From Diplonema japonicum (taxonomy: Eukaryota; Protista; Euglenozoa: Diplonemea): DNA of 64,000 nt. Where the stretch lies: contig OZ025681.1 of the NCBI GenBank assembly GCA_964019335.1, forward strand, positions 310,001 to 374,000. Reading direction: 5' to 3'. Both the position numbers and the translations under genes were made by a program. The notes under the pieces are model-generated. The model searched no databases, was not told the origin of the DNA, and saw only the letters and a program-made list of their open reading frames with translations. Below are positions 50,548 to 61,766 of this stretch, piece by piece. Each line of letters starts with the position of its first letter. Within the stretch, counting starts at the first letter, position 1.

Positions 50548-53500
50548 CTCGATAAAAATTTCAGTGTGCATGGGGGTGCTCACTGTTCAGGTAGAAATTC
50601 ACACTAATCGGTCACCGTTCTGCGGTTGCTGTCTGGTGCCTGCGGTGGCTGTTTGTCGCGATGAGATGGACGGCATCTGGGCGAGAAACATTGCTTGGAG
50701 TCGTGCTAGGTAGGGGGGGGTTTGGCTCGAGGAGAAGAGTGGTCTCCTGTCGTAGCCGTGTGCCGTCGGGGCCCCAAGATGTCGAAGGGTATGCACCCTT
50801 GATTTGGCGTTGGCGGGGGAAGGCTGACCTTCCACAGCGTGCTGAGCATTTCTGGATGCGACCCAAGATGTATCGCATCCTTGCGGCCTTCTCCGTGAGC
50901 AGGTCTTGATCGTCGAGGGGACCTATGAGCGACCGGCGGGTGGTCTGCTCATAGTCTATGGCGAGTTCCATTGTCGTGACGGAAGTTTTCTTCTTACCAT
51001 CGTACCATCGTAGGCCTCTTAGCCACTTGAGGACGTTCTTCAAATGAAAGGTCAGGACCGCGCCTGACGCCCCGTTCGCCTTCAACAACGCTTCCGTCGG
51101 AACATCATGTTGCCTCCCTGTCGTTACCTCATCCCAAGGGTTGGAGGTGAGCACTCTCTTGCTTTTTTCCGCTGCTCTGGCGTCACGGACCGTCACTACT
51201 TTCAGGAGGTATTGTTGCACCATCCTGGCACGTTCTTTCCCTGCTTTGTCGGCTCCTCTTGGGACTATCCCGTGAAGGGCTGTGGCAGCTGGGAGGCCTT
51301 CTCGCTTCACCTCTGCGTATTGCTCGCTTTCCAACACACTCCTTGCCGGCTCGCACTCCCACAGTGCATGCTCCGTCATGCTGGTCGTTGTCTGGGACCG
51401 GTGGTCGCAAACGTCACACGCTAATGCTGGGTTTTCCACACCAGGGCCATCCAATTTTCTCCCCCACACCCTCGGGTGAGTCGTGAACACTGCACCACTA
51501 ATGATGCGCCGCAACCTAAAGGACACCAACGGTCTCCGGGCCTGGAGCTTTTTCCACCAATAGTTCGTGGACGGGCACGCCCCTGCCTCCATCCCCACGA
51601 AGGTTGATCTCTTCTCGATCAGCCTCTTCGCAACTGCCGGTCTGATGGCTTGCCTCACTTTGTGAGCCACCGCTGTATCTCCGTGCAGGTCGGCCACAAA
51701 GGACCATCCCTTCCCCAGAAAGGGGAGCCATCTGTTCCGCAGGACTCCAATCGGACCCATCACCTCATCGTCATCACGGTCCTGGTATAGACCAATGATC
51801 TCACCAACACGCGTAGATGACCTTCGACAACGGATGTGCCGTATGCCCTGGCAGCAGAACGTTCAGTACAGACACGGGGTTTCTCATCCCGAACTGGGGC
51901 CCCACAAGGAGATCACTGCCCCTGTACACATCTTCTTCAGCTGGTCGTCCGAGGGTGCCGCATACGTCGCTCCGTATGCTCGTCAACATCGTCGACTTGT
52001 TCTCAAACCCTAGTGGCAAAGCTCCGAGACGGGTCAGGCGTCCCTCCGCTGCGTCCAGCTTGTCCAGCCTGTGATTCCCATCCATGTTCAGGTTCACGCC
52101 AAGTGATTTGATCTCCCTAGCTACCTTGAACGAGGAACCGGTGCATACTAAACTAGGGCCGATCTCGTTTTTCGTCGAGAATCCCTGCGACTTCTTTCCG
52201 TTGAGGCGCATCTCTGTCCGGTCCCCGAACTCGATCACCTTGTTGGTCGCCCTTGTCAGGACCTCCGCTAAACGCGCCAGGAGGTACACGTCATCCGCGT
52301 ACGAAAGTGACCAAGCTCCTGGTACTTCCGTCATCACGCACTTCACCATCACCGACACCAAGGCGTTCACCATGATTACCGAGATGGGGCACCCTTGCAG
52401 GATACCATTCGTCACTCGGAACTCTGAGCCAACACCTGTCGGGAAACGGAATCGCCGCTTCAGGTTCGCATACATAGCTTTCAAGGGGGTCAGTATCCGC
52501 TCGTGCAAACCGAGATCTTGCATCAGGCCAAAAGCTATCTGCTGTGGGACTCTGTCGAAGCACTTGACAAAATCCAACGCAATGCCGTTGAGAGGGGTGC
52601 CTGTCAACAGCGCCTCTTCGAGCTGTGTACTGAGCTCCATCAGAATGCTATCCGTGCCTCTCTTCGGTCTGAAACCATGCTGAGAGTCGTCGATCCACTT
52701 CTCTTGCCACAGCGTGATGTCACGCAGCCTCGCACATGCCCACAGCCGATAGACCGCGCTCGTGACTGTGATCGGCCGATGGTTCAGAGGAGTTCTCTCG
52801 CCACCCTTCGGGATCAACGTCACCAGCGCTGTCAGGAGTGCTTTCGGCCACTTCCCTGTCGTCTCGATTGCGTTGAACAGCTCGGCCCAAGCATCCAGCA
52901 GTACTACCGGCATGGCACGCAGTTCCGCCCATCCATCCACCCCTGGAGCCGTTCTCGTTGACTTCTTGGCCAACACCGCCCTCAGATCCTCTCCTGTAAG
53001 TGGTCGAAGTTCCATCTTCTGCGACACGATGTACTCCCTGTACCTCGTTCTAAAGGCGTTGTACTGCGGCTCTCCTCGATCCCCACCGTACAGCTGAAAA
53101 ATAGGGTCCCACTCCTTGTGCATCATCTTGTCCATCTCTTCAAGATCTGCCGTGAGAACCCCGTCGCCTTCCACTGCCTGCGTTGCTGATGCCGTTGTGC
53201 CCTTCGCGAAGGCGGTCACCCTCTTCCGTTCCTCCCTGAAGTGGGTGTTGATCCTCTCTTCATACTTCCTTTCACGCTCGACCCTCGCGTCCTTTGCGAT
53301 CACTCGCGCCAGAGCGGACAGGTCGTCGTCTAGGCGTTGAAGTTTGATGATAATCGTTTCAAAATTGTCCTTCATCAGACCCACCTCGCATCTCGGAAGC
53401 TGCGGGAGCTTCGCTAGCACCTTTATAGCATTCGCCCAAGTCCTCAGCAGCTGCTCCGGCATGTTGCTTGCTAGTCCCCTGTCGAGCAGATCTTGGACTC

Positions 53501-53558
53501 CCGCAAGGATGTGCGAGACTTTCCGCTTCACCTCGGCGATGCACTTCTGCCAGCCCAC
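50548..53558 (-). mobile_element. 5'-truncated, frameshifted non-LTR retrotransposon (RT plus C-terminal CCHC domain)
   Basis: RT motifs APGVDG, LIPK, RPITV, QHGFRP, LDFVKCFD, GILQGCPIS, YADD and LGV in 51801..53558. CCHC knuckle in 50612..51763. No endonuclease is seen (5' end missing); frameshifts lie near 51950-51770 and 50800. Confidence 0.92.
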
Positions 53559-54489: not shown

Positions 54490-56724
54490 CTAAATGGTAC
54501 CTTCCTGAGCATCTGTTGGGCTGGCAGGACCAGTCATAGAGAAAGAAGGGTACTGCGAAGGTCCTGTGGGGGACTGGAAGGGCGCATTCTGCGGGGATCC
54601 AGAAGTATAAGGATTCGCAGCAATCTGCGTCCCATTCCCAGCAGGGGATCCGGAGGTATAAGGGTTGCCTGATGGTGGTGGCACGTACCCAGGGGAGGCA
54701 GGGGCTACAGGAAGCCCGGGTGGACCGGGAGCAGGGAGTTTTGGAGGATCAACCTGTCCAGGAGGAGCAGAAGGGATTGGACCCTGAGGGAGTCCGGGAG
54801 GGCCAGGAGCCCCCGGAGGGGAAGCAGGGGGAACATATCCCCCTTGCTGCTGCTGCTGCTGCGGCCTGTAAGCCACGCTGCTGGGATCATAGTTTGATCC
54901 GCTGTCAGGGAAGAGGTCGAACTTTGTGTCATTAACATCGTAAGGAGCAGAGGAGGAGACCTGAGGGATCTGATCGAAGCCCTTCTGGCTCAGGGACTTC
55001 CTGATCGCAAACAGCAGCGACACCAACGAGTGCGACTTGTTCTGCTGGGTGGCGACGAGGAAGGCGGAGGTGAGGGCCCCACCGGCCTTGTTGTCCGCCA
55101 GCTCCACGAACGCCTTCCCCACCGCCTGCACATCTGCAGAAGTCGAGGCATCCTCGCACCCTGAGATCATGATCGCATCGCAGTCGATTCTGTTCTTCTC
55201 TGACATCTGGTCCCCCATCATCTTGCACTTCTTCTCTGTCTCCGATGCGATCGCGTAGTACGGCAGGTCCAGTACCGTCCCGCTGTGGCAGCAGTCCATG
55301 ATGGAGAGCAGCCTGTTCCCCCTGGGGATCCGCTTCACCAGGTCGTGCTGCAGCTCGTCGTCCGAGATCATCCCCTCCGTCTCGTAGTCCACAGGGCAGA
55401 TCGTCTCGTCCAGACCGTCGATCTCGTCCCCAGTCTCGTCCTTCTCCTGCGACCCGTGGCCCGAGAAGTGCATGAACAGGGTCTTGTTGTCGTTCGTCGA
55501 CACCCCTTCCACGAGCCACGCCATCCCCCTCTGGATGTTCGCCTTCGTCGGCTGCTTCACGTAGTCCTGCTCGTCGTCCGTCAGCACCCTGATCTCGTAC
55601 GCCCCGTGCAGCCGCTGTGCCAGTCGGTTCACATCGTTGATGCACCCCGACAGCTCGCCCCCTGTCCCGTAGTAGTTGATCCCCACAAGCAGAGCCTTTC
55701 GGTTGCTCGGGCCGTAGCAAGTAGGAGGAGGGACAGGGGCAGGTGTGAAGTTCTGGATGTTGTTGTTGTTCAGCCTCAAACGAGGGCGGTTGCCCCCTAA
55801 GATGTCCAACAGCATTTCAGCCATGATGAGGTCCACAGCATGCTGTGGGAGCAAAGGGTGGCTCTGCTCCTGGACAGTGACGAGCTTTGTTTTGACCAAA
55901 CCAATCCAAAACCCGTGTGCCCCCACCAACCACGCGGCGATGAACAAGTAGAACCCATACCCGAACTTGAAACTGTTCCCCAGTTTGGCATCCCCGCAGT
56001 CCTTCACTTTCTTGTACAGCAAAATCACAGCAAGAGCCAACAGAGCACAATTGGCACAGAATGAAATGGTTGCCGCGAAGGCACGGAGGTTCTTGCGGTA
56101 GTTCCATTCCCGCTTCGGTGGGCTGGCGATGAGGTACGTCAGGACAATGAGGATGTAGACACCCATCGAGACCAGTGAGATGATGAAGATGTTCTCTGCC
56201 CAGAACCAGATGCTGTCGAACTCAGAGGGCGAGCACCCGGGGATACTGGACTTCAATAAGTTCACAATATCTTTTCGCGAGGAAAGCAACCCGATATCAT
56301 CGATTTGTGCAGTCGAGGGGTCGGGCGCCTGAGTTGATGGGGCACGTGTGGTGCCTGCCGGTTGGGGTGTTGTCCTTGGGGCAGCTGTGAGCTTCCTAAT
56401 CTCATCCTTGAATGAAGGTGCGTCGAAAATAGGAGCATCATAAATAGGTGCGGACCAAACAGGTGCAAGGTTAGACTCATCGTAGCCACCATTGTTACCA
56501 CCACCACCATTGTTACCCCCACCACCGTTACCCCCACCACCACCACCACCACCACCGCCGTTGTTGCCACCATTATTCCCACCTCCATCAGTATCCCCAT
56601 CATACTTGAAAAGCGCCCCCTCACGACCCCCTATCCCCAGCAGGACCATGGCCACCACAACGGCGACTACCTTCCTTGCCAGGGCTATTTTGTCGAGGCC
56701 CCTTTCATGGCGGGTGTATGCCAT
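54490..56724 (-). CDS. Amastin/claudin-like four-TM domain fused to metacaspase (peptidase C14B) with Pro-rich tail, copy 1
   Basis: Four hydrophobic helices ending FGYGFYLFIAAWLV, then RKALLVGINY, LSGCINDV, HFSGHG (His), DCCHSG (Cys), SGCED...SAD and QIPQVSS. Confidence 0.9.
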   Translation of the reverse strand: MAYTRHERGLDKIALARKVVAVVVAMVLLGIGGREGALFKYDGDTDGGGNNGGNNGGGGGGGGGGNGGGGNNGGGGNNGGYDESNLAPVWSAPIYDAPIFDAPSFKDEIRKLTAAPRTTPQPAGTTRAPSTQAPDPSTAQIDDIGLLSSRKDIVNLLKSSIPGCSPSEFDSIWFWAENIFIISLVSMGVYILIVLTYLIASPPKREWNYRKNLRAFAATISFCANCALLALAVILLYKKVKDCGDAKLGNSFKFGYGFYLFIAAWLVGAHGFWIGLVKTKLVTVQEQSHPLLPQHAVDLIMAEMLLDILGGNRPRLRLNNNNIQNFTPAPVPPPTCYGPSNRKALLVGINYYGTGGELSGCINDVNRLAQRLHGAYEIRVLTDDEQDYVKQPTKANIQRGMAWLVEGVSTNDNKTLFMHFSGHGSQEKDETGDEIDGLDETICPVDYETEGMISDDELQHDLVKRIPRGNRLLSIMDCCHSGTVLDLPYYAIASETEKKCKMMGDQMSEKNRIDCDAIMISGCEDASTSADVQAVGKAFVELADNKAGGALTSAFLVATQQNKSHSLVSLLFAIRKSLSQKGFDQIPQVSSSAPYDVNDTKFDLFPDSGSNYDPSSVAYRPQQQQQQGGYVPPASPPGAPGPPGLPQGPIPSAPPGQVDPPKLPAPGPPGLPVAPASPGYVPPPSGNPYTSGSPAGNGTQIAANPYTSGSPQNAPFQSPTGPSQYPSFSMTGPASPTDAQEGTI

Positions 56725-56821
56725 TTACTTTTTTGTTTTTTGTTTTTCTTTTTGTAATTCCTTTTTATACTTTTGATGCATTTGGTCCAGGGAATGCCTC
56801 ACTGAAAAAAAATATAAGAAA

Positions 56822-56857
<36 letters not shown>

Positions 56858-57269
56858 ACGAGAAGACAGGGGGAAAATGGAAAGGAACGGAAGATAAGAT
56901 AACAGTCCCCTCCCCCCCTTCCCCTCTCCACTGGTTTTGCTTCTTATTTCTTTTCCCTTTTTTTTCTTTCCATTCTTTTTTAAAAAAAATATTAAAAAAA
57001 ATCGGTCGGACGACTTTCAAAAGTATATCGTGGCAATGGACAATATACCATAATGGGTGAATTGGATTTATATGGAAAAAAAAAAAAAAAAAAAATCTCT
57101 AGTAATAAAAAACTAAAGATAGTGTGCTGAAGAAAGATAAACTCAAAGTTTAAAAAATAAAAAAAAGACAAAACTCCACTACAGGACTGTCTCTTGCGTG
57201 ACGCGGAGCTTTAATCTGTGGTAATGCTTCCCTTCTGGGACATAAACCATCTTGTAGAAAAAAAAAATA

Positions 57270-57345
57270 ACTATTTATTACCAACAAAGTAATGAGTCGT
57301 AATTTTAACGAGAGTCAAATTGTGGCTCATTTGGTGGTAAGTCAT
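57270..57345 (+). repeat. Short remnant of the Crypton-like hairpin family
   Basis: ctatttattaccaacaaagtaatgagtc...aacgagagt...ggctcatttgg.ggtaagt matches the reverse complement of 9925..10050. Confidence 0.6.
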
Positions 57346-57638
57346 TTTTTTTTTTTTTTTGAACCCTTTCGTTATTTGATTCACTACTTGACCAAATTGC
57401 TAGTAATCTGCGACAAGAAATAAAAAACTTAAAAAAAGATTGAAAAGAAAAGGTGTATCAGACACCAGTTTCGACTCCGTGAACTCAAATCTTTTTTTGT
57501 TTTTTTTTTTTTTTTTTTTTTTTTTTTGTCTTCTACTAGAAATATGAGGGTCACAATGTAAGCGAAGAAAATGACGAATGGGGTGTAAAGTAAAGTAAAA
57601 AGAAAATTATGTTTGAATTGGATTTATGTCATTTTAAA

Positions 57639-57670
<32 letters not shown>

Positions 57671-57980
57671 CAACCTGTCTTACCTTAAGTTACTCATAGA
57701 GTCAATATTTAAAAACAGGTGAGCAGTAAAGGTAACAACTTAATGAACGACTTCTGCGACGGGCCCTTGTGCCAATATGCGACACTAATATACAATCACA
57801 ACAACAAAAAATTTAAAAAAAAAAATAAAATAAAAAAGAAAATATCATCCGACTGATGGCGCCATCAAACCTTGTGTTCATGGCACGCAGTTTTACTTCC
57901 TGTCTGTTAGTAGAAGAAGGAAAAGGGGTGGGGAGAAAAAAACCAAACAAAGGGTTAGAAATGTTTTATTTTCTTCTTTA

Positions 57981-60092
57981 TTAAATAGTCCCTTCCTCCA
58001 ATGTCGGGCCTGGGCTCCCCGCCATAGAGAAAGAAGGGTACTGCGAAGGTCCTGTGGGGGACTGGAAGGGTGCATTCTGCGGGGACCCAGAAGTATAAGG
58101 ATTCTCAGCAACCCTTGCCCCCCGGCCTGCAGGAGGTACAGGTGCTCCCCGCCCTGCAGAAGGCACAGACGAGCCGTTTGTGTAAGGATTGCTAGCCGGG
58201 AGTGGCATTGCTCCGAAATTAGGTATCCCCTGGGTCAGCATAGGGAGCCCGGGGGGGCCAGGAGCCCCCGGAGGGGAAGCAGGGGGAACATATCCCCCTT
58301 GCTGCTGCTGCTGCTGCGGCCTGTAAGCCACGCTGCTGGGATCATAGTTTGATCCGCTGTCAGGGAAGAGGTCGAACTTTGTGTCATTAACATCGTAAGG
58401 AGCAGAGGAGGAGACCTGAGGGATCTGATCGAAGCCCTTCTGGCTCAGGGACTTCCTGATCGCAAACAGCAGCGACACCAACGAGTGCGACTTGTTCTGC
58501 TGGGTGGCGACGAGGAAGGCGGAGGTGAGGGCCCCACCGGCCTTGTTGTCCGCCAGCTCCACGAACGCCTTCCCCACCGCCTGCACATCTGCAGAAGTCG
58601 AGGCATCCTCGCACCCTGAGATCATGATCGCATCGCAGTCGATTCTGTTCTTCTCTGACATCTGGTCCCCCATCATCTTGCACTTCTTCTCTGTCTCCGA
58701 TGCGATCGCGTAGTACGGCAGGTCCAGTACCGTCCCGCTGTGGCAGCAGTCCATGATGGAGAGCAGCCTGTTCCCCCTGGGGATCCGCTTCACCAGGTCG
58801 TGCTGCAGCTCGTCGTCCGAGATCATCCCCTCCGTCTCGTAGTCCACAGGGCAGATCGTCTCGTCCAGACCGTCGATCTCGTCCCCAGTCTCGTCCTTCT
58901 CCTGCGACCCGTGGCCCGAGAAGTGCATGAACAGGGTCTTGTTGTCGTTCGTCGACACCCCTTCCACGAGCCACGCCATCCCCCTCTGGATGTTCGCCTT
59001 CGTCGGCTGCTTCACGTAGTCCTGCTCGTCGTCCGTCAGCACCCTGATCTCGTACGCCCCGTGCAGCCGCTGTGCCAGTCGGTTCACATCGTTGATGCAC
59101 CCCGACAGCTCGCCCCCTGTCCCGTAGTAGTTGATCCCCACAAGCAGAGCCTTTCGGTTGCTCGGGCCGTAGCAAGTAGGAGGAGGGACAGGGGCAGGTG
59201 TGAAGTTCTGGATGTTGTTGTTGTTCAGCCTCAAACGAGGGCGGTTGCCCCCTAAGATGTCCAACAGCATTTCAGCCATGATGAGGTCCACAGCATGCTG
59301 TGGGAGCAAAGGGTGGCCCTGTTCCTGGACAGTGACGAGCTTGTCCTGTACCAAACCAATCCAAAACCCGTGTGCCCCCACCAACCACGCGGCGATGAAC
59401 AAGTAGAACCCATACCCGAACTTGAAACTGTTCCCCAGTTTGGCATCCCCGCAGTCCTTCACTTTCTTGTACAGCAAAATCACAGCAAGAGCCAACAGAG
59501 CACAATTGGCACAGAATACAATGGTTGCCGCGAAGGCACGGAGGTTCTTGCGGTAGTTCCATTCCCGCTTCGGTGGGCTGGCGATGAGGTACGTCAGGAC
59601 AATGAGGATGTAGACACCCATCGAGACCAGTGAGATGATGAAGATGTTCTCTGCCCAGAACCAGATGCTGTCGAACTCAGAGGGCGAGCACCCGGGGATA
59701 CTGGACTTCAATAAGTTCACAATATCTTTTCGCGAGGAAAGCAACCCGATATCATCGATTTGTGCAGTCGAGGGGTCGGGCGCCTGAGTTGATGGGGCAC
59801 GTGTGGTGCCTGCCGGTTGGGGTGTTGTCCTTGGGGCAGCTGTGAGCTTCCTAATCTCATCCTTGAATGAAGGTGCGTCGAAAATAGGAGCATCATAAAT
59901 AGGTGCGGACCAAACAGGTGCAAGGTTAGACTCATCGTTGCCACCATTGTTACCACCACCACTCGGGCCATCATACTTAAAAAGGACTCCATCACGAGCC
60001 CCGACCCACAGCAGTACCCCAGCTATCACCACCGCTATGACCTTTCTTGCCAAGGCAAGTTTATCAAGCCTGCTAACGACACGTGTTACCAT
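57981..60092 (-). CDS. Amastin/claudin-like four-TM domain fused to metacaspase, copy 2
   Basis: First ATG at 60092 (MVTRVVSRLDK). Nearly identical to copy 1 at a 3455-bp offset except for the N-terminus and tail. Confidence 0.9.
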   Translation of the reverse strand: MVTRVVSRLDKLALARKVIAVVIAGVLLWVGARDGVLFKYDGPSGGGNNGGNDESNLAPVWSAPIYDAPIFDAPSFKDEIRKLTAAPRTTPQPAGTTRAPSTQAPDPSTAQIDDIGLLSSRKDIVNLLKSSIPGCSPSEFDSIWFWAENIFIISLVSMGVYILIVLTYLIASPPKREWNYRKNLRAFAATIVFCANCALLALAVILLYKKVKDCGDAKLGNSFKFGYGFYLFIAAWLVGAHGFWIGLVQDKLVTVQEQGHPLLPQHAVDLIMAEMLLDILGGNRPRLRLNNNNIQNFTPAPVPPPTCYGPSNRKALLVGINYYGTGGELSGCINDVNRLAQRLHGAYEIRVLTDDEQDYVKQPTKANIQRGMAWLVEGVSTNDNKTLFMHFSGHGSQEKDETGDEIDGLDETICPVDYETEGMISDDELQHDLVKRIPRGNRLLSIMDCCHSGTVLDLPYYAIASETEKKCKMMGDQMSEKNRIDCDAIMISGCEDASTSADVQAVGKAFVELADNKAGGALTSAFLVATQQNKSHSLVSLLFAIRKSLSQKGFDQIPQVSSSAPYDVNDTKFDLFPDSGSNYDPSSVAYRPQQQQQQGGYVPPASPPGAPGPPGLPMLTQGIPNFGAMPLPASNPYTNGSSVPSAGRGAPVPPAGRGARVAENPYTSGSPQNAPFQSPTGPSQYPSFSMAGSPGPTLEEGTI

Positions 60093-60164
60093 GTTATATC
60101 CTTTTCTTAACTTTATTTCACATTTGACAAGGGGCAAAAAAAAAAGAGGGAGAAAGGGGTAATC

Positions 60165-61505
60165 CTAGATTCTAGACAGCTTAGTTAACATCTCTCGCGC
60201 TTTTTCGGCCACACCGACACCGTGCTGGGATGCCCGGGATGTTTCTAGAATCTCCATAAGCTTCTGCGACGAGACGGGCCGGGAGTCTGCGAAAAGAAAA
60301 TTTGCAACGGGAAGCATGACGTCGCGAGGGGCGTCTTGTTCTAACGCAGAGAGAAGCACTTCGCAGAGAAGATGCGCAGGGACCCCGACTATCGAAGGGG
60401 AGCGAGAGACACATGTGATGAGAGATAGGGGTACGTCTGTGTGGAGGGAACGGAGCGAAGAGACCACAGATGATAAAAGCAAAGCATCTTTGGAGGTTTG
60501 AGAACATATGGATCGGAGCAGTGTGTCCATCACCTCGGGGTGGAAGAAAGTGTGCTTGGAGAAAAGCTTACAAATTTCATCGCAGGTGTTCAGAGGGATC
60601 ACGGTTTTTTGATGCGCGTCTGCTAAGAAACGGCAACACGCATCGAGGAGCTTTCTGTCATTTGAAGCAAAACCTGCCGACAGTACACCGGGGCTTTCCT
60701 CGGTTTTGAATGTGCGGTTTTCCATTTTTGTTATAAGCACTTCGCTGAATAATTTCATTGCGGTGTTTTCTCGATTCACGCGGAGCCGCGCTGCGGACCA
60801 CAAGCAAGCCGAGGTATACGCATTGTCGATTCTCCCGGTCGATTTGATGTAGTTTAGAATGAAATCCCTGCCGTTGAAATCGACAGCAGCTTTTGCAAAG
60901 CAATGCAGGGTGCCGATGCAATCCTCGAGGTTTGGCCGTGGTCCGAACTGTATCTTCTTCCTGCCCAGGGATCTGGGAAGCGCGTCGCCCGGGATGTTAG
61001 AAAGAAGGAAGAAACACGGTTTCAAAGTAACCGCACCGGGGTGGTTTGAGACAATCTCTGTCAACAGCGCGTTGTCGCCACCGATTCTGTTAAGCTCAGA
61101 GCGTGCGGACAGCTCTGAAAGGGACCATGTTAGTTCGCAGAGGTCCGGGATATTTAGCCCTTTGGTTGAAATGACCGATTCTACTAGACGAGGTACCGGG
61201 CCTGTTTTGACAGAGTACTTCGCAAAGCCGGACAACGCTGACAGCATTTCCGTTGAATTGTGGGGGACTTTCTTTCTGTGCAGCAGTGCAGCGATGGCTG
61301 TGGCCTTTTCCTTCCCCGCTACTCTGCATATTTCAGCGAGATCTCTTGCGGCGTACCTTGTGAGATCCCTCAGCTCTAGCTTTCGCACAATGTCCTCTGC
61401 TTCTTTGATCTTCCCCTGCGTGCGCGCCCTTCGGACCCATTGGGGTATTTCCCCCTTTCGCACTTCCGTTAAAACCGCTTGCTTCGCTTGATGCGACGTT
61501 TGCAT
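60165..61505 (-). CDS. Helical-repeat protein (OPR/HPR/FASTK-like), putative organellar RNA-binding
   Basis: Likely start MQTSHQ at 61505. Recurring ~35-40 aa units: EMLSALSGFAK, DLCELTWSLSEL, DCIGTLHCFAKA, YTSACLWSAARL. Confidence 0.65.
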   Translation of the reverse strand: MQTSHQAKQAVLTEVRKGEIPQWVRRARTQGKIKEAEDIVRKLELRDLTRYAARDLAEICRVAGKEKATAIAALLHRKKVPHNSTEMLSALSGFAKYSVKTGPVPRLVESVISTKGLNIPDLCELTWSLSELSARSELNRIGGDNALLTEIVSNHPGAVTLKPCFFLLSNIPGDALPRSLGRKKIQFGPRPNLEDCIGTLHCFAKAAVDFNGRDFILNYIKSTGRIDNAYTSACLWSAARLRVNRENTAMKLFSEVLITKMENRTFKTEESPGVLSAGFASNDRKLLDACCRFLADAHQKTVIPLNTCDEICKLFSKHTFFHPEVMDTLLRSICSQTSKDALLLSSVVSSLRSLHTDVPLSLITCVSRSPSIVGVPAHLLCEVLLSALEQDAPRDVMLPVANFLFADSRPVSSQKLMEILETSRASQHGVGVAEKAREMLTKLSRI

Positions 61506-61766
61506 GTTTTCTTTTTTTTTTTTTTTCCTCTTTTTTTTCTCAATTTGTATATCTTTTTTTTTATCTTTGTCCTTCCCCCCGTTACTTTTTTTTTCTTCTC
61601 CCCGTGGGTGTGTGGAAATAGTTCCTATTAGTAAGTATGCGGGTTTGCTCGTGCGAACAATCAAGGAAAAAAAAAAAAAAAAGAGAGAGAGAAAAAAAAA
61701 AGGAGGAAAAAGAGCCGGCCACCCCCCCCCCCCCCCCCCCCTAGTTGCACTCGAAAACATATATTA

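Follow-up and report, generated by a model that had tools for sequence, protein, structure and literature searches.

Tandem Diplonema japonicum genes for a type I metacaspase fused to a four-helix, possibly amastin-like membrane module

Metacaspases are ancient caspase relatives whose location in the cell is thought to govern their role. Membrane association of eukaryotic metacaspases is documented mainly through lipid, as in Trypanosoma brucei MCA4 and MCA3, or through unknown means, as in Chlamydomonas CrMCA-II. Amastins are a large euglenozoan surface family whose function, to our knowledge, is still unknown. We describe two tandem genes in a 64,000-nucleotide stretch of the diplonemid Diplonema japonicum (contig OZ025681.1, positions 310,001 to 374,000 of the forward strand; hereafter the window) in which a module of four transmembrane (TM) helices is joined in frame to an intact type I metacaspase.

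Acylated, membrane-bound metacaspases occur in T. brucei: dual acylation anchors MCA4 to the flagellar membrane, and processing and release have been described for MCA4/MCA3 (PMC3220528). Under stress, CrMCA-II translocates from the plasma membrane to the cytoplasm (PMC10896300). According to the same paper, TM domains are found in orthocaspases and type I metacaspases of prokaryotes and, rarely, of green algae (PMC10896300). Amastin-like proteins are reported to predate kinetoplastids and to be pan-euglenozoan (PMC6366073). Since TM-bearing metacaspases are already in the literature, a TM metacaspase as such is not new; what is new is a probable amastin-like tetraspan anchor that is conserved in Diplonemidae. 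A full-text literature search turned up neither a link between metacaspases and amastins nor a diplonemid metacaspase fusion, in line with the first-pass annotation of the window, which had regarded the fusion as undescribed.

Two tandem copies of an in-frame fusion

The listing of open reading frames (ORFs) contained two uninterrupted minus-strand ORFs, at 54490-56724 (copy 1; 744 amino acids (aa), starting at ATG) and 57981-60092 (copy 2; 703 aa). The open frame of copy 2 covers 57981-60137 and gives 718 aa from an upstream TTG; its first ATG, at 60092, gives 703 aa. In each copy TM1 is followed by a low-complexity loop and TM2-TM4, after which a 23-residue linker leads to an intact type I metacaspase (MEROPS C14B) and a P/Q/Y-rich tail (Table 1). 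This low-complexity extension is similar to the one in Yca1 and in kinetoplastid MCA5. The proteins encoded by copy 1 and copy 2 are 84% identical overall. TM4 of copy 1 (aa 255-277) opens with SFKFGYGFYLF and contains FGYGFYLFIAAWLV. MAEMLLDILGG follows at aa 301-311, where the Met301 codon starts at 55824; the equivalent Met272 codon of copy 2 lies at 59279. The first reading had proposed one uninterrupted ORF per copy, and every element it named (TM1-TM4, the Cys, MAEMLLDILGG, the catalytic dyad and the tail) was located, with the junctions at 55824 and 59279.

The protease part was readily recognised in both copies. Peptidase_C14 (PF00656) matched at E 1.1e-35 and 9.7e-36 (123.9 and 124 bits; cut-off 21.4), and a comparison with PDB sequences returned yeast Yca1 (4f6o) at E 3e-52 and T. 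brucei MCA2 (4afr) at E 1e-48. The catalytic dyad is kept: HFSGHG (aa 419-424) and MDCCHSG (aa 476-482) align with the Yca1 motifs, and both are invariant in the family alignment. An acidic stretch resembling a Ca site, DETGDEIDGLDETICPVD at aa 429-446, aligned with known metacaspases, and the GCINDV and SDDE motifs were conserved. The p20 and p10 parts are contiguous, not permuted and without a long type II linker: Pfam matched a single stretch (aa 342-592), and the alignment to TbMCA2 was unbroken over query positions 42-300. For the catalytic domain we predict Ca2+-dependent cleavage after Arg/Lys. A separate metacaspase ORF, L025 (C56:105287-106168), has the permuted order, with a p10-like part ahead of the p20 part.

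Evidence that the two halves belong to one gene came from independent contigs, from the duplication and from selection. Contigs came from four public runs, produced by three studies; they were of unrecorded kind and behaved like DNA assemblies. Record 11 of run X5 spans 54800-56721 and record 31 of run X8 spans 58255-60101, so that both domain junctions are crossed by independent contigs. The duplication has a core of 1.72 kb (54787-56507 versus 58242-59962) with 99.4% identity, flanked by coding ends that have diverged; no alignment was obtainable for the DNA between the two copies. Because the core includes both the tetraspan and the protease, the two halves have been homogenised as a single unit. 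The TM1 codons of the copies share 73.5% nucleotide identity. Over 40 codons around TM1 there were 20.5 synonymous and 16.5 non-synonymous differences (synonymous rate dS 1.44, non-synonymous rate dN 0.22, ratio 0.15, binomial p 1e-4). This ratio indicates that the N-terminus is translated as protein and constrained in both copies.

Comparable fusions were present in other diplonemids. Several hydrophobic helices upstream of the protease were seen in only four of 155 retrieved relatives: P0003 and P0121 (889 and 891 aa, the latter from a Trinity transcript of Rhynchopus humris), P0006 (a complete 720-aa ORF on a Lacrimia lanifica Trinity transcript) and P0004 (945 aa; from an ENA genome). They are laid out like the window copies: a long outer loop and a Cys lie between TM1 and TM2-TM4, which end in SF.[FL]G..FY; about 30 linker residues then lead to a hydrophobic helix and a basic motif, and the metacaspase and its low-complexity tail come last. 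The fusions in Rhynchopus, Lacrimia and the P0004 genome mean that the architecture is not unique to D. japonicum; it is common to Diplonemidae and unannotated in public transcriptomes. Together with the spanning contigs and the constraint on TM1, these relatives bear out the earlier proposal of an in-frame fusion of a four-TM module and an intact metacaspase in two copies. A bacterial or viral origin of the fusion was rejected: best matches were diplonemid throughout.

In a maximum-likelihood tree the window pair grouped with the other fusions and with the nearest stand-alone metacaspases in a single clade (99% support). Its stand-alone members are two of D. japonicum's own (L021 and L022), P0001, Lacrimia P0002 and Flectonema P0005; Trypanoplasma borreli P0018, the sole kinetoplastid row in the tree, fell outside the clade. 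In all clade members the catalytic domain is preceded by a hydrophobic helix and the basic motif [RK].R[LYH]NN...F.P.P[VI]PPP. The stand-alone ORF L021:1216-2499 (+) on contig C11 has the N-terminus MGDLISICCDCEE, and L022:1468-2517 (-) on contig C5 has MGDSLSSLVDCCGCCGC. Both begin with MG and carry cysteine clusters, from which N-myristoylation and palmitoylation are predicted. These N-termini suggest that membrane tethering is a property of the whole clade, whether by lipid or by tetraspan. A single origin of the fusion would be the simpler reading. Branch order within the clade was unsupported, and neither a sister relationship of the window fusion to the other fusions (approximately unbiased test, p 0.505) nor one to the stand-alone forms (p 0.63) was rejected. 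The N-terminus of the window fusion and those of the other diplonemid fusions were weakly alike in pairwise comparison (E 0.03-0.5), and hhalign of the window copies against the other fusions gave 73%.

Two other accounts of the locus were weighed against this evidence. That the fusion is an assembly chimera or a decaying pseudogene is scarcely credible. A reverse-transcriptase ORF (51801-53558) adjoins the pair and there are hints of a structural variant without copy 2; against this, both ORFs are intact with all catalytic motifs kept, the N-terminus is under purifying selection and other species have comparable fusions. The first-pass annotation had argued from the two copies that the assembly was not at fault, and an artefact is indeed excluded, because independent DNA contigs cross the domain junction. 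It is also quite unlikely that the locus yields two products, with an internal spliced-leader acceptor or start at Met301 (55824) or Met272 (59279) producing a soluble metacaspase besides or instead of the fusion. Met301 does lie at about the start of the hydrophobic helix in the stand-alone paralogues, and the coding sequence upstream of it reads CCACCCTTTGCTCCCACAG, which is pyrimidine-rich and ends in AG 17 nt before the ATG. The pyrimidine richness of this stretch is accounted for by its Pro and Leu codons, however, and the junction has the GC-rich make-up of ordinary coding sequence, whereas the 1.2-kb spacer between the copies is AT-rich and has homopolymer runs. The frame is moreover continuous in four species, both halves lie on a single transcript in two relatives, and the TM1 codons are under purifying selection. 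The protein collection contained neither the full-length fusion nor the Met301/Met272 versions; D. japonicum's own stand-alone paralogues were absent from it too, so that this absence, nominally a point against the fusion, is uninformative either way. We conclude that each copy is likely to be one gene for a multi-pass membrane-anchored type I metacaspase with a probable amastin-like anchor.

The four-helix anchor and its relation to amastins

Hydropathy placed the four helices of copy 1 at aa 13-37, 179-199, 215-237 and 255-277. Lys and Arg are abundant in the N-terminus and in the TM2-TM3 loop; the long outer loop is acidic. By the positive-inside rule, the K/R-rich N-terminus and inner loop put the N-terminus and everything after TM4 in the cytosol. 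The protease is thus predicted to lie on the cytosolic face of the membrane with both termini cytosolic, where the first reading had also placed it. TM1 may act as a signal anchor or be cleaved off as a signal peptide; the protease would be cytosolic in either case. As predicted from hydropathy and charge, the module has the layout of an amastin: four TM helices, a large first and a small second outer loop, and cytosolic termini. The first outer loop differs in length between the copies; it consists of a G/N repeat plus a T/P-rich stretch, and no Pfam domain was found in it. In the relatives (Rhynchopus, Lacrimia and the P0004 genome) this loop is 200-280 residues long and contains Cys. About nine beta strands were predicted at aa 60-205 of P0003, with a predicted local distance difference test score (pLDDT) of 40-50 and no Pfam match; the full-length AlphaFold (AF2) model of P0003 had a pLDDT of 48.8 and was confident in the protease domain only. 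As modelled, the P0003 loop may be an unrecognised extracellular domain that was replaced by low-complexity sequence in D. japonicum.

Several comparisons pointed to amastins as the source of the anchor. The Pfam Amastin family (PF07344) matched the copies at E 3.4e-4 and 6.9e-4 (21.0 and 20.0 bits) over TM2-TM4 (aa 176-267 in copy 1). When the 62.5-Mb assembly (132 contigs) was scanned with the same family, at least 11 stand-alone ORFs of 200-364 aa scored above the cut-off, and the window copies (24.5 and 23.6 bits) ranked just under the stand-alone amastin-like ORFs. These ORFs (L004-L015) lie on contigs C26, C27, C20, C93, C78, C59 and C58, with local arrays at 78-87 kb of C93 and 138-163 kb of C59. 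Two of them, L009 and L013, are identical over their full length (100%) to the EukProt D. japonicum transcripts P0123 and P0122, which carry PF07344, showing that the amastin-like family is expressed. A profile search from D. japonicum's own amastin-like proteins matched only three diplonemid transcripts.

Profiles were compared with hhalign against 10 amastin-like ORFs of the D. japonicum genome, nine of them above the Pfam cut-off. All fusion N-termini pooled gave 94% with a score of 57; the reversed control scored 24, eight column shuffles no more than 12 and 12 block shuffles no more than 44. The other diplonemid fusions alone gave 76%. In the joint alignment four features appeared in the same order: G-[LFV]-[LFY] in loop 1 (Gly plus two hydrophobic residues), one Cys ahead of TM2 and another just behind TM3, and SF.[FL]G.GFY, with which TM4 opens. 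The near-invariant Gly in loop 1 stands at the place of the CG[LM]F.C (C-G-[LM]-[FY]-x-C) motif of the paralogues.

On these grounds we lean towards regarding the N-terminal 277 residues as a divergent euglenozoan amastin-like (claudin-like) tetraspan. A number of results count against this assignment, and they would be expected if the anchor were convergent or belonged to another tetraspan family, with the signal arising from shared hydrophobic composition. The Amastin scores of 20-24.5 bits are below the 27.2-bit gathering threshold; P0003, P0004 and P0006 had no Pfam Amastin match at E <= 1; and the window copies alone gave only 24% in hhalign against the amastin family. The loop-1 Cys pair is lost: the copies read IGLLSSRK there, with the Cys before TM2 kept. 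A phmmer search with the tetraspan (aa 131-300) against 1.84 billion proteins gave zero matches. The AF2 model of the anchor, examined for the four-helix bundle and outer-loop beta-sheet of a claudin/PMP22-like fold, had a pLDDT of 55.6 and no strands, and this low-confidence model found no specific fold: the best Foldseek E was 0.87, and VIA-align returned generic helical hairpins at Z about 9. Leads from the ESM Atlas, all below 0.9, were uncharacterised tetraspans; a cluster bearing Amastin ranked 7th and a claudin cluster 28th. We nevertheless consider an unrelated anchor unlikely, if to be taken seriously. Block shuffles reached 44, but the profile-profile score of 57 exceeded every reversed, column-shuffled and block-shuffled control. 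No Pfam family matched either anchor better than Amastin, whose match was collinear over TM2-TM4, the four motif-level features aligned in order, and the expanded amastin-like family of the organism is a possible donor. The amastin/claudin assignment of the first-pass annotation therefore holds in part: it is carried by the pooled profile comparison and the collinear features, and falls short in the sub-threshold Pfam scores and in the comparison of the window copies alone.

L035:3351-7565 (+) on C95 and five similar ORFs (1177-1464 aa) encode an SLC34-type Na/Pi cotransporter of about twice the usual length. In L035, the one ORF examined, Na_Pi_cotrans is accompanied by a phytase-like domain (E 6.5e-9) and by three TM helices at the C-terminal end, with GLGLWEMC about 85 residues past a TM helix at about aa 525-543. 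L035 had no Pfam Amastin match, and the profile of D. japonicum's own amastin-like ORFs gave it only 1.7 bits; it is at most a plausible candidate for a tetraspan.

Features of the locus

Coordinates of the two copies and their parts are given in Table 1. Directly downstream of copy 1, on the minus strand, is a 585-aa ORF with RVT_1 (E 2.6e-20; 51801-53558), followed on the same strand by a 383-aa ORF (50612-51763); the tandem pair thus has a retroelement-like neighbour. Upstream of copy 2, a 531-aa ORF (60165-61760) without a Pfam family has its stop only 72 nt from the copy 2 ATG, and the gap (60093-60167) is mostly a pyrimidine tract. Either the 3' untranslated region of this ORF is extremely short or overlapping, or its C-terminus is not real.

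One contig of run X6 links 56999 to 60131 through 36 unrelated letters, and loose ends were found at 56989 and 60136 in runs X3, X5 and X6. The join and the loose ends look like a haplotype or strain variant, a one-copy allele without copy 2. Copy-2-specific segments were covered too in the runs showing this putative allele.

Table 1. Positions of the two fusion genes and their parts in the window
Feature	Window positions	Strand	Basis
Copy 1, complete ORF (tetraspan, metacaspase and P/Q/Y-rich tail), 744 aa	54490..56724	-	ORF listing, Pfam
Copy 1 TM1, aa 13-37, after K/R-rich N-terminus	56614..56688	-	hydropathy; dN/dS 0.15
Copy 1 outer loop, aa 38-178: G/N repeat, T/P-rich stretch, degenerate IGLLSSRK, Cys164	56191..56613	-	alignment, hydropathy
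Copy 1 TM2-TM3-TM4, aa 179-277; K/R-rich inner loop; Cys243 in second outer loop	55894..56190	-	Pfam, hhalign
Copy 1 predicted cytosolic linker aa 278-300, MAEMLLDILGG helix 301-311, basic NRPRLRLNNNN 312-322	55759..55893	-	alignment
Copy 1 metacaspase catalytic domain, aa 342-597	54934..55701	-	Pfam E 1.1e-35, PDB sequence matches
Copy 1 P/Q/Y-rich low-complexity tail, aa 598-744 (start approximate)	54493..54933	-	sequence
Copy 2, complete ORF, 703 aa from first ATG	57981..60092	-	ORF listing, Pfam
Copy 2 TM1, aa 12-36	59985..60059	-	hydropathy
Copy 2 outer loop, aa 37-149, shorter G/N repeat	59646..59984	-	sequence, hydropathy
Copy 2 TM2-TM4, aa 150-248	59349..59645	-	Pfam, hydropathy
Copy 2 linker, helix and NRPRLRLNNNN motif, aa 249-293	59214..59348	-	sequence
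Copy 2 metacaspase domain, aa 313-568	58389..59156	-	Pfam
Copy 2 P/Q/Y-rich tail, aa 569-703, diverged from copy 1 tail	57984..58388	-	alignment
Homogenised core of the duplication, spanning tetraspan and protease	54787..56507		99.4% identical to 58242-59962
Pyrimidine tract then AG, about 78 nt upstream of copy 1 ATG; possible spliced-leader acceptor	56802..56820	-	sequence inference

Proposed function and comparison with described systems

The arrangement suggests a way in which such a protein might work. The tetraspan would keep a zymogen at the cytosolic side of the membrane, joined to it through the 23-residue linker, the conserved hydrophobic helix and the basic N-R-P-R-L-R; by analogy with amastins, the plasma membrane would be the likely site. 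A local rise in Ca2+ might switch the enzyme on, and the activated enzyme would cleave membrane-proximal substrates. Self-cleavage at the conserved basic, Arg-rich motif could then free the catalytic domain. In its fullest form the proposal is speculative and rather unlikely: an ancient diplonemid amastin-like-tetraspan metacaspase would act as a plasma-membrane sensor and effector of Ca2+ influx or damage, with local activation and self-release at N-R-P-R-L-R, and anchor swapping would tune the release.

The first-pass annotation had likened the protein to a one-component receptor-protease. In such a receptor the outer loop would bind an external ligand and the tetraspan would relay the signal to the cytosolic protease. 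The long Cys-containing loops of the relatives and the predicted beta-rich P0003 loop (pLDDT 40-50) would suit such a receptor. In D. japonicum the idea found no support, because the outer loop is low-complexity (G/N, T/P), varies in length between the copies and has no recognisable Pfam domain. We also know of no signal-transmission mechanism for amastin- or claudin-type tetraspans, and consider a receptor-protease improbable.

The case rests on sequence, and its practical importance is modest, as D. japonicum is a free-living marine flagellate. A tetraspan fusion would nonetheless fix topology and stoichiometry, and would offer a clean test system for whether local Ca2+ entry switches on a tethered metacaspase. 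If the anchor is what it appears to be, the amastin-like tetraspan fold would gain a first role, that of a module by which cytosolic enzymes are anchored.

The anchor resembles Amastin (PF07344) in its four TM helices, its large and small outer loops, its predicted cytosolic termini and its best Pfam match over TM2-TM4. The F.[FL]G.GFY.. motif of TM4 and the loop cysteines also align with D. japonicum's own amastin-like proteins. It differs in scoring below the family threshold and in the loss of the loop-1 Cys pair in the fusions. A 467-residue enzyme and tail follows TM4 here, whereas the organism's own amastin-like ORFs measure only 200-364 aa in all.

The protease half is like yeast Yca1/Mca1 (4f6o) and TbMCA2 (4af8/4afr) in its catalytic domain, His/Cys motifs, acidic Ca-site stretch and contiguous p20-p10. 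Where those enzymes have the usual soluble pro-domain, the window copies have a 277-residue four-TM module. Orthocaspases and type I metacaspases with TM domains likewise combine a caspase-fold protease with predicted TM helices (PMC10896300). The description given there mentions no amastin/claudin-like tetraspan.

CrMCA-II is a zymogen stored at the plasma membrane and provides a precedent for the hold-and-release that we infer; it differs in being a type II enzyme without a TM domain, with a protective role independent of proteolysis (PMC10896300). T. brucei MCA4/MCA3 (PMC3220528) offer a parallel in placement, being likewise metacaspases kept at the cytosolic side of a membrane. The nearest stand-alone paralogues of the window copies have MG and Cys-cluster N-termini of the same type. 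The anchor is a lipid there and an integral tetraspan here. Unlike MCA4, which is a pseudopeptidase, both window copies have retained their His and Cys motifs.

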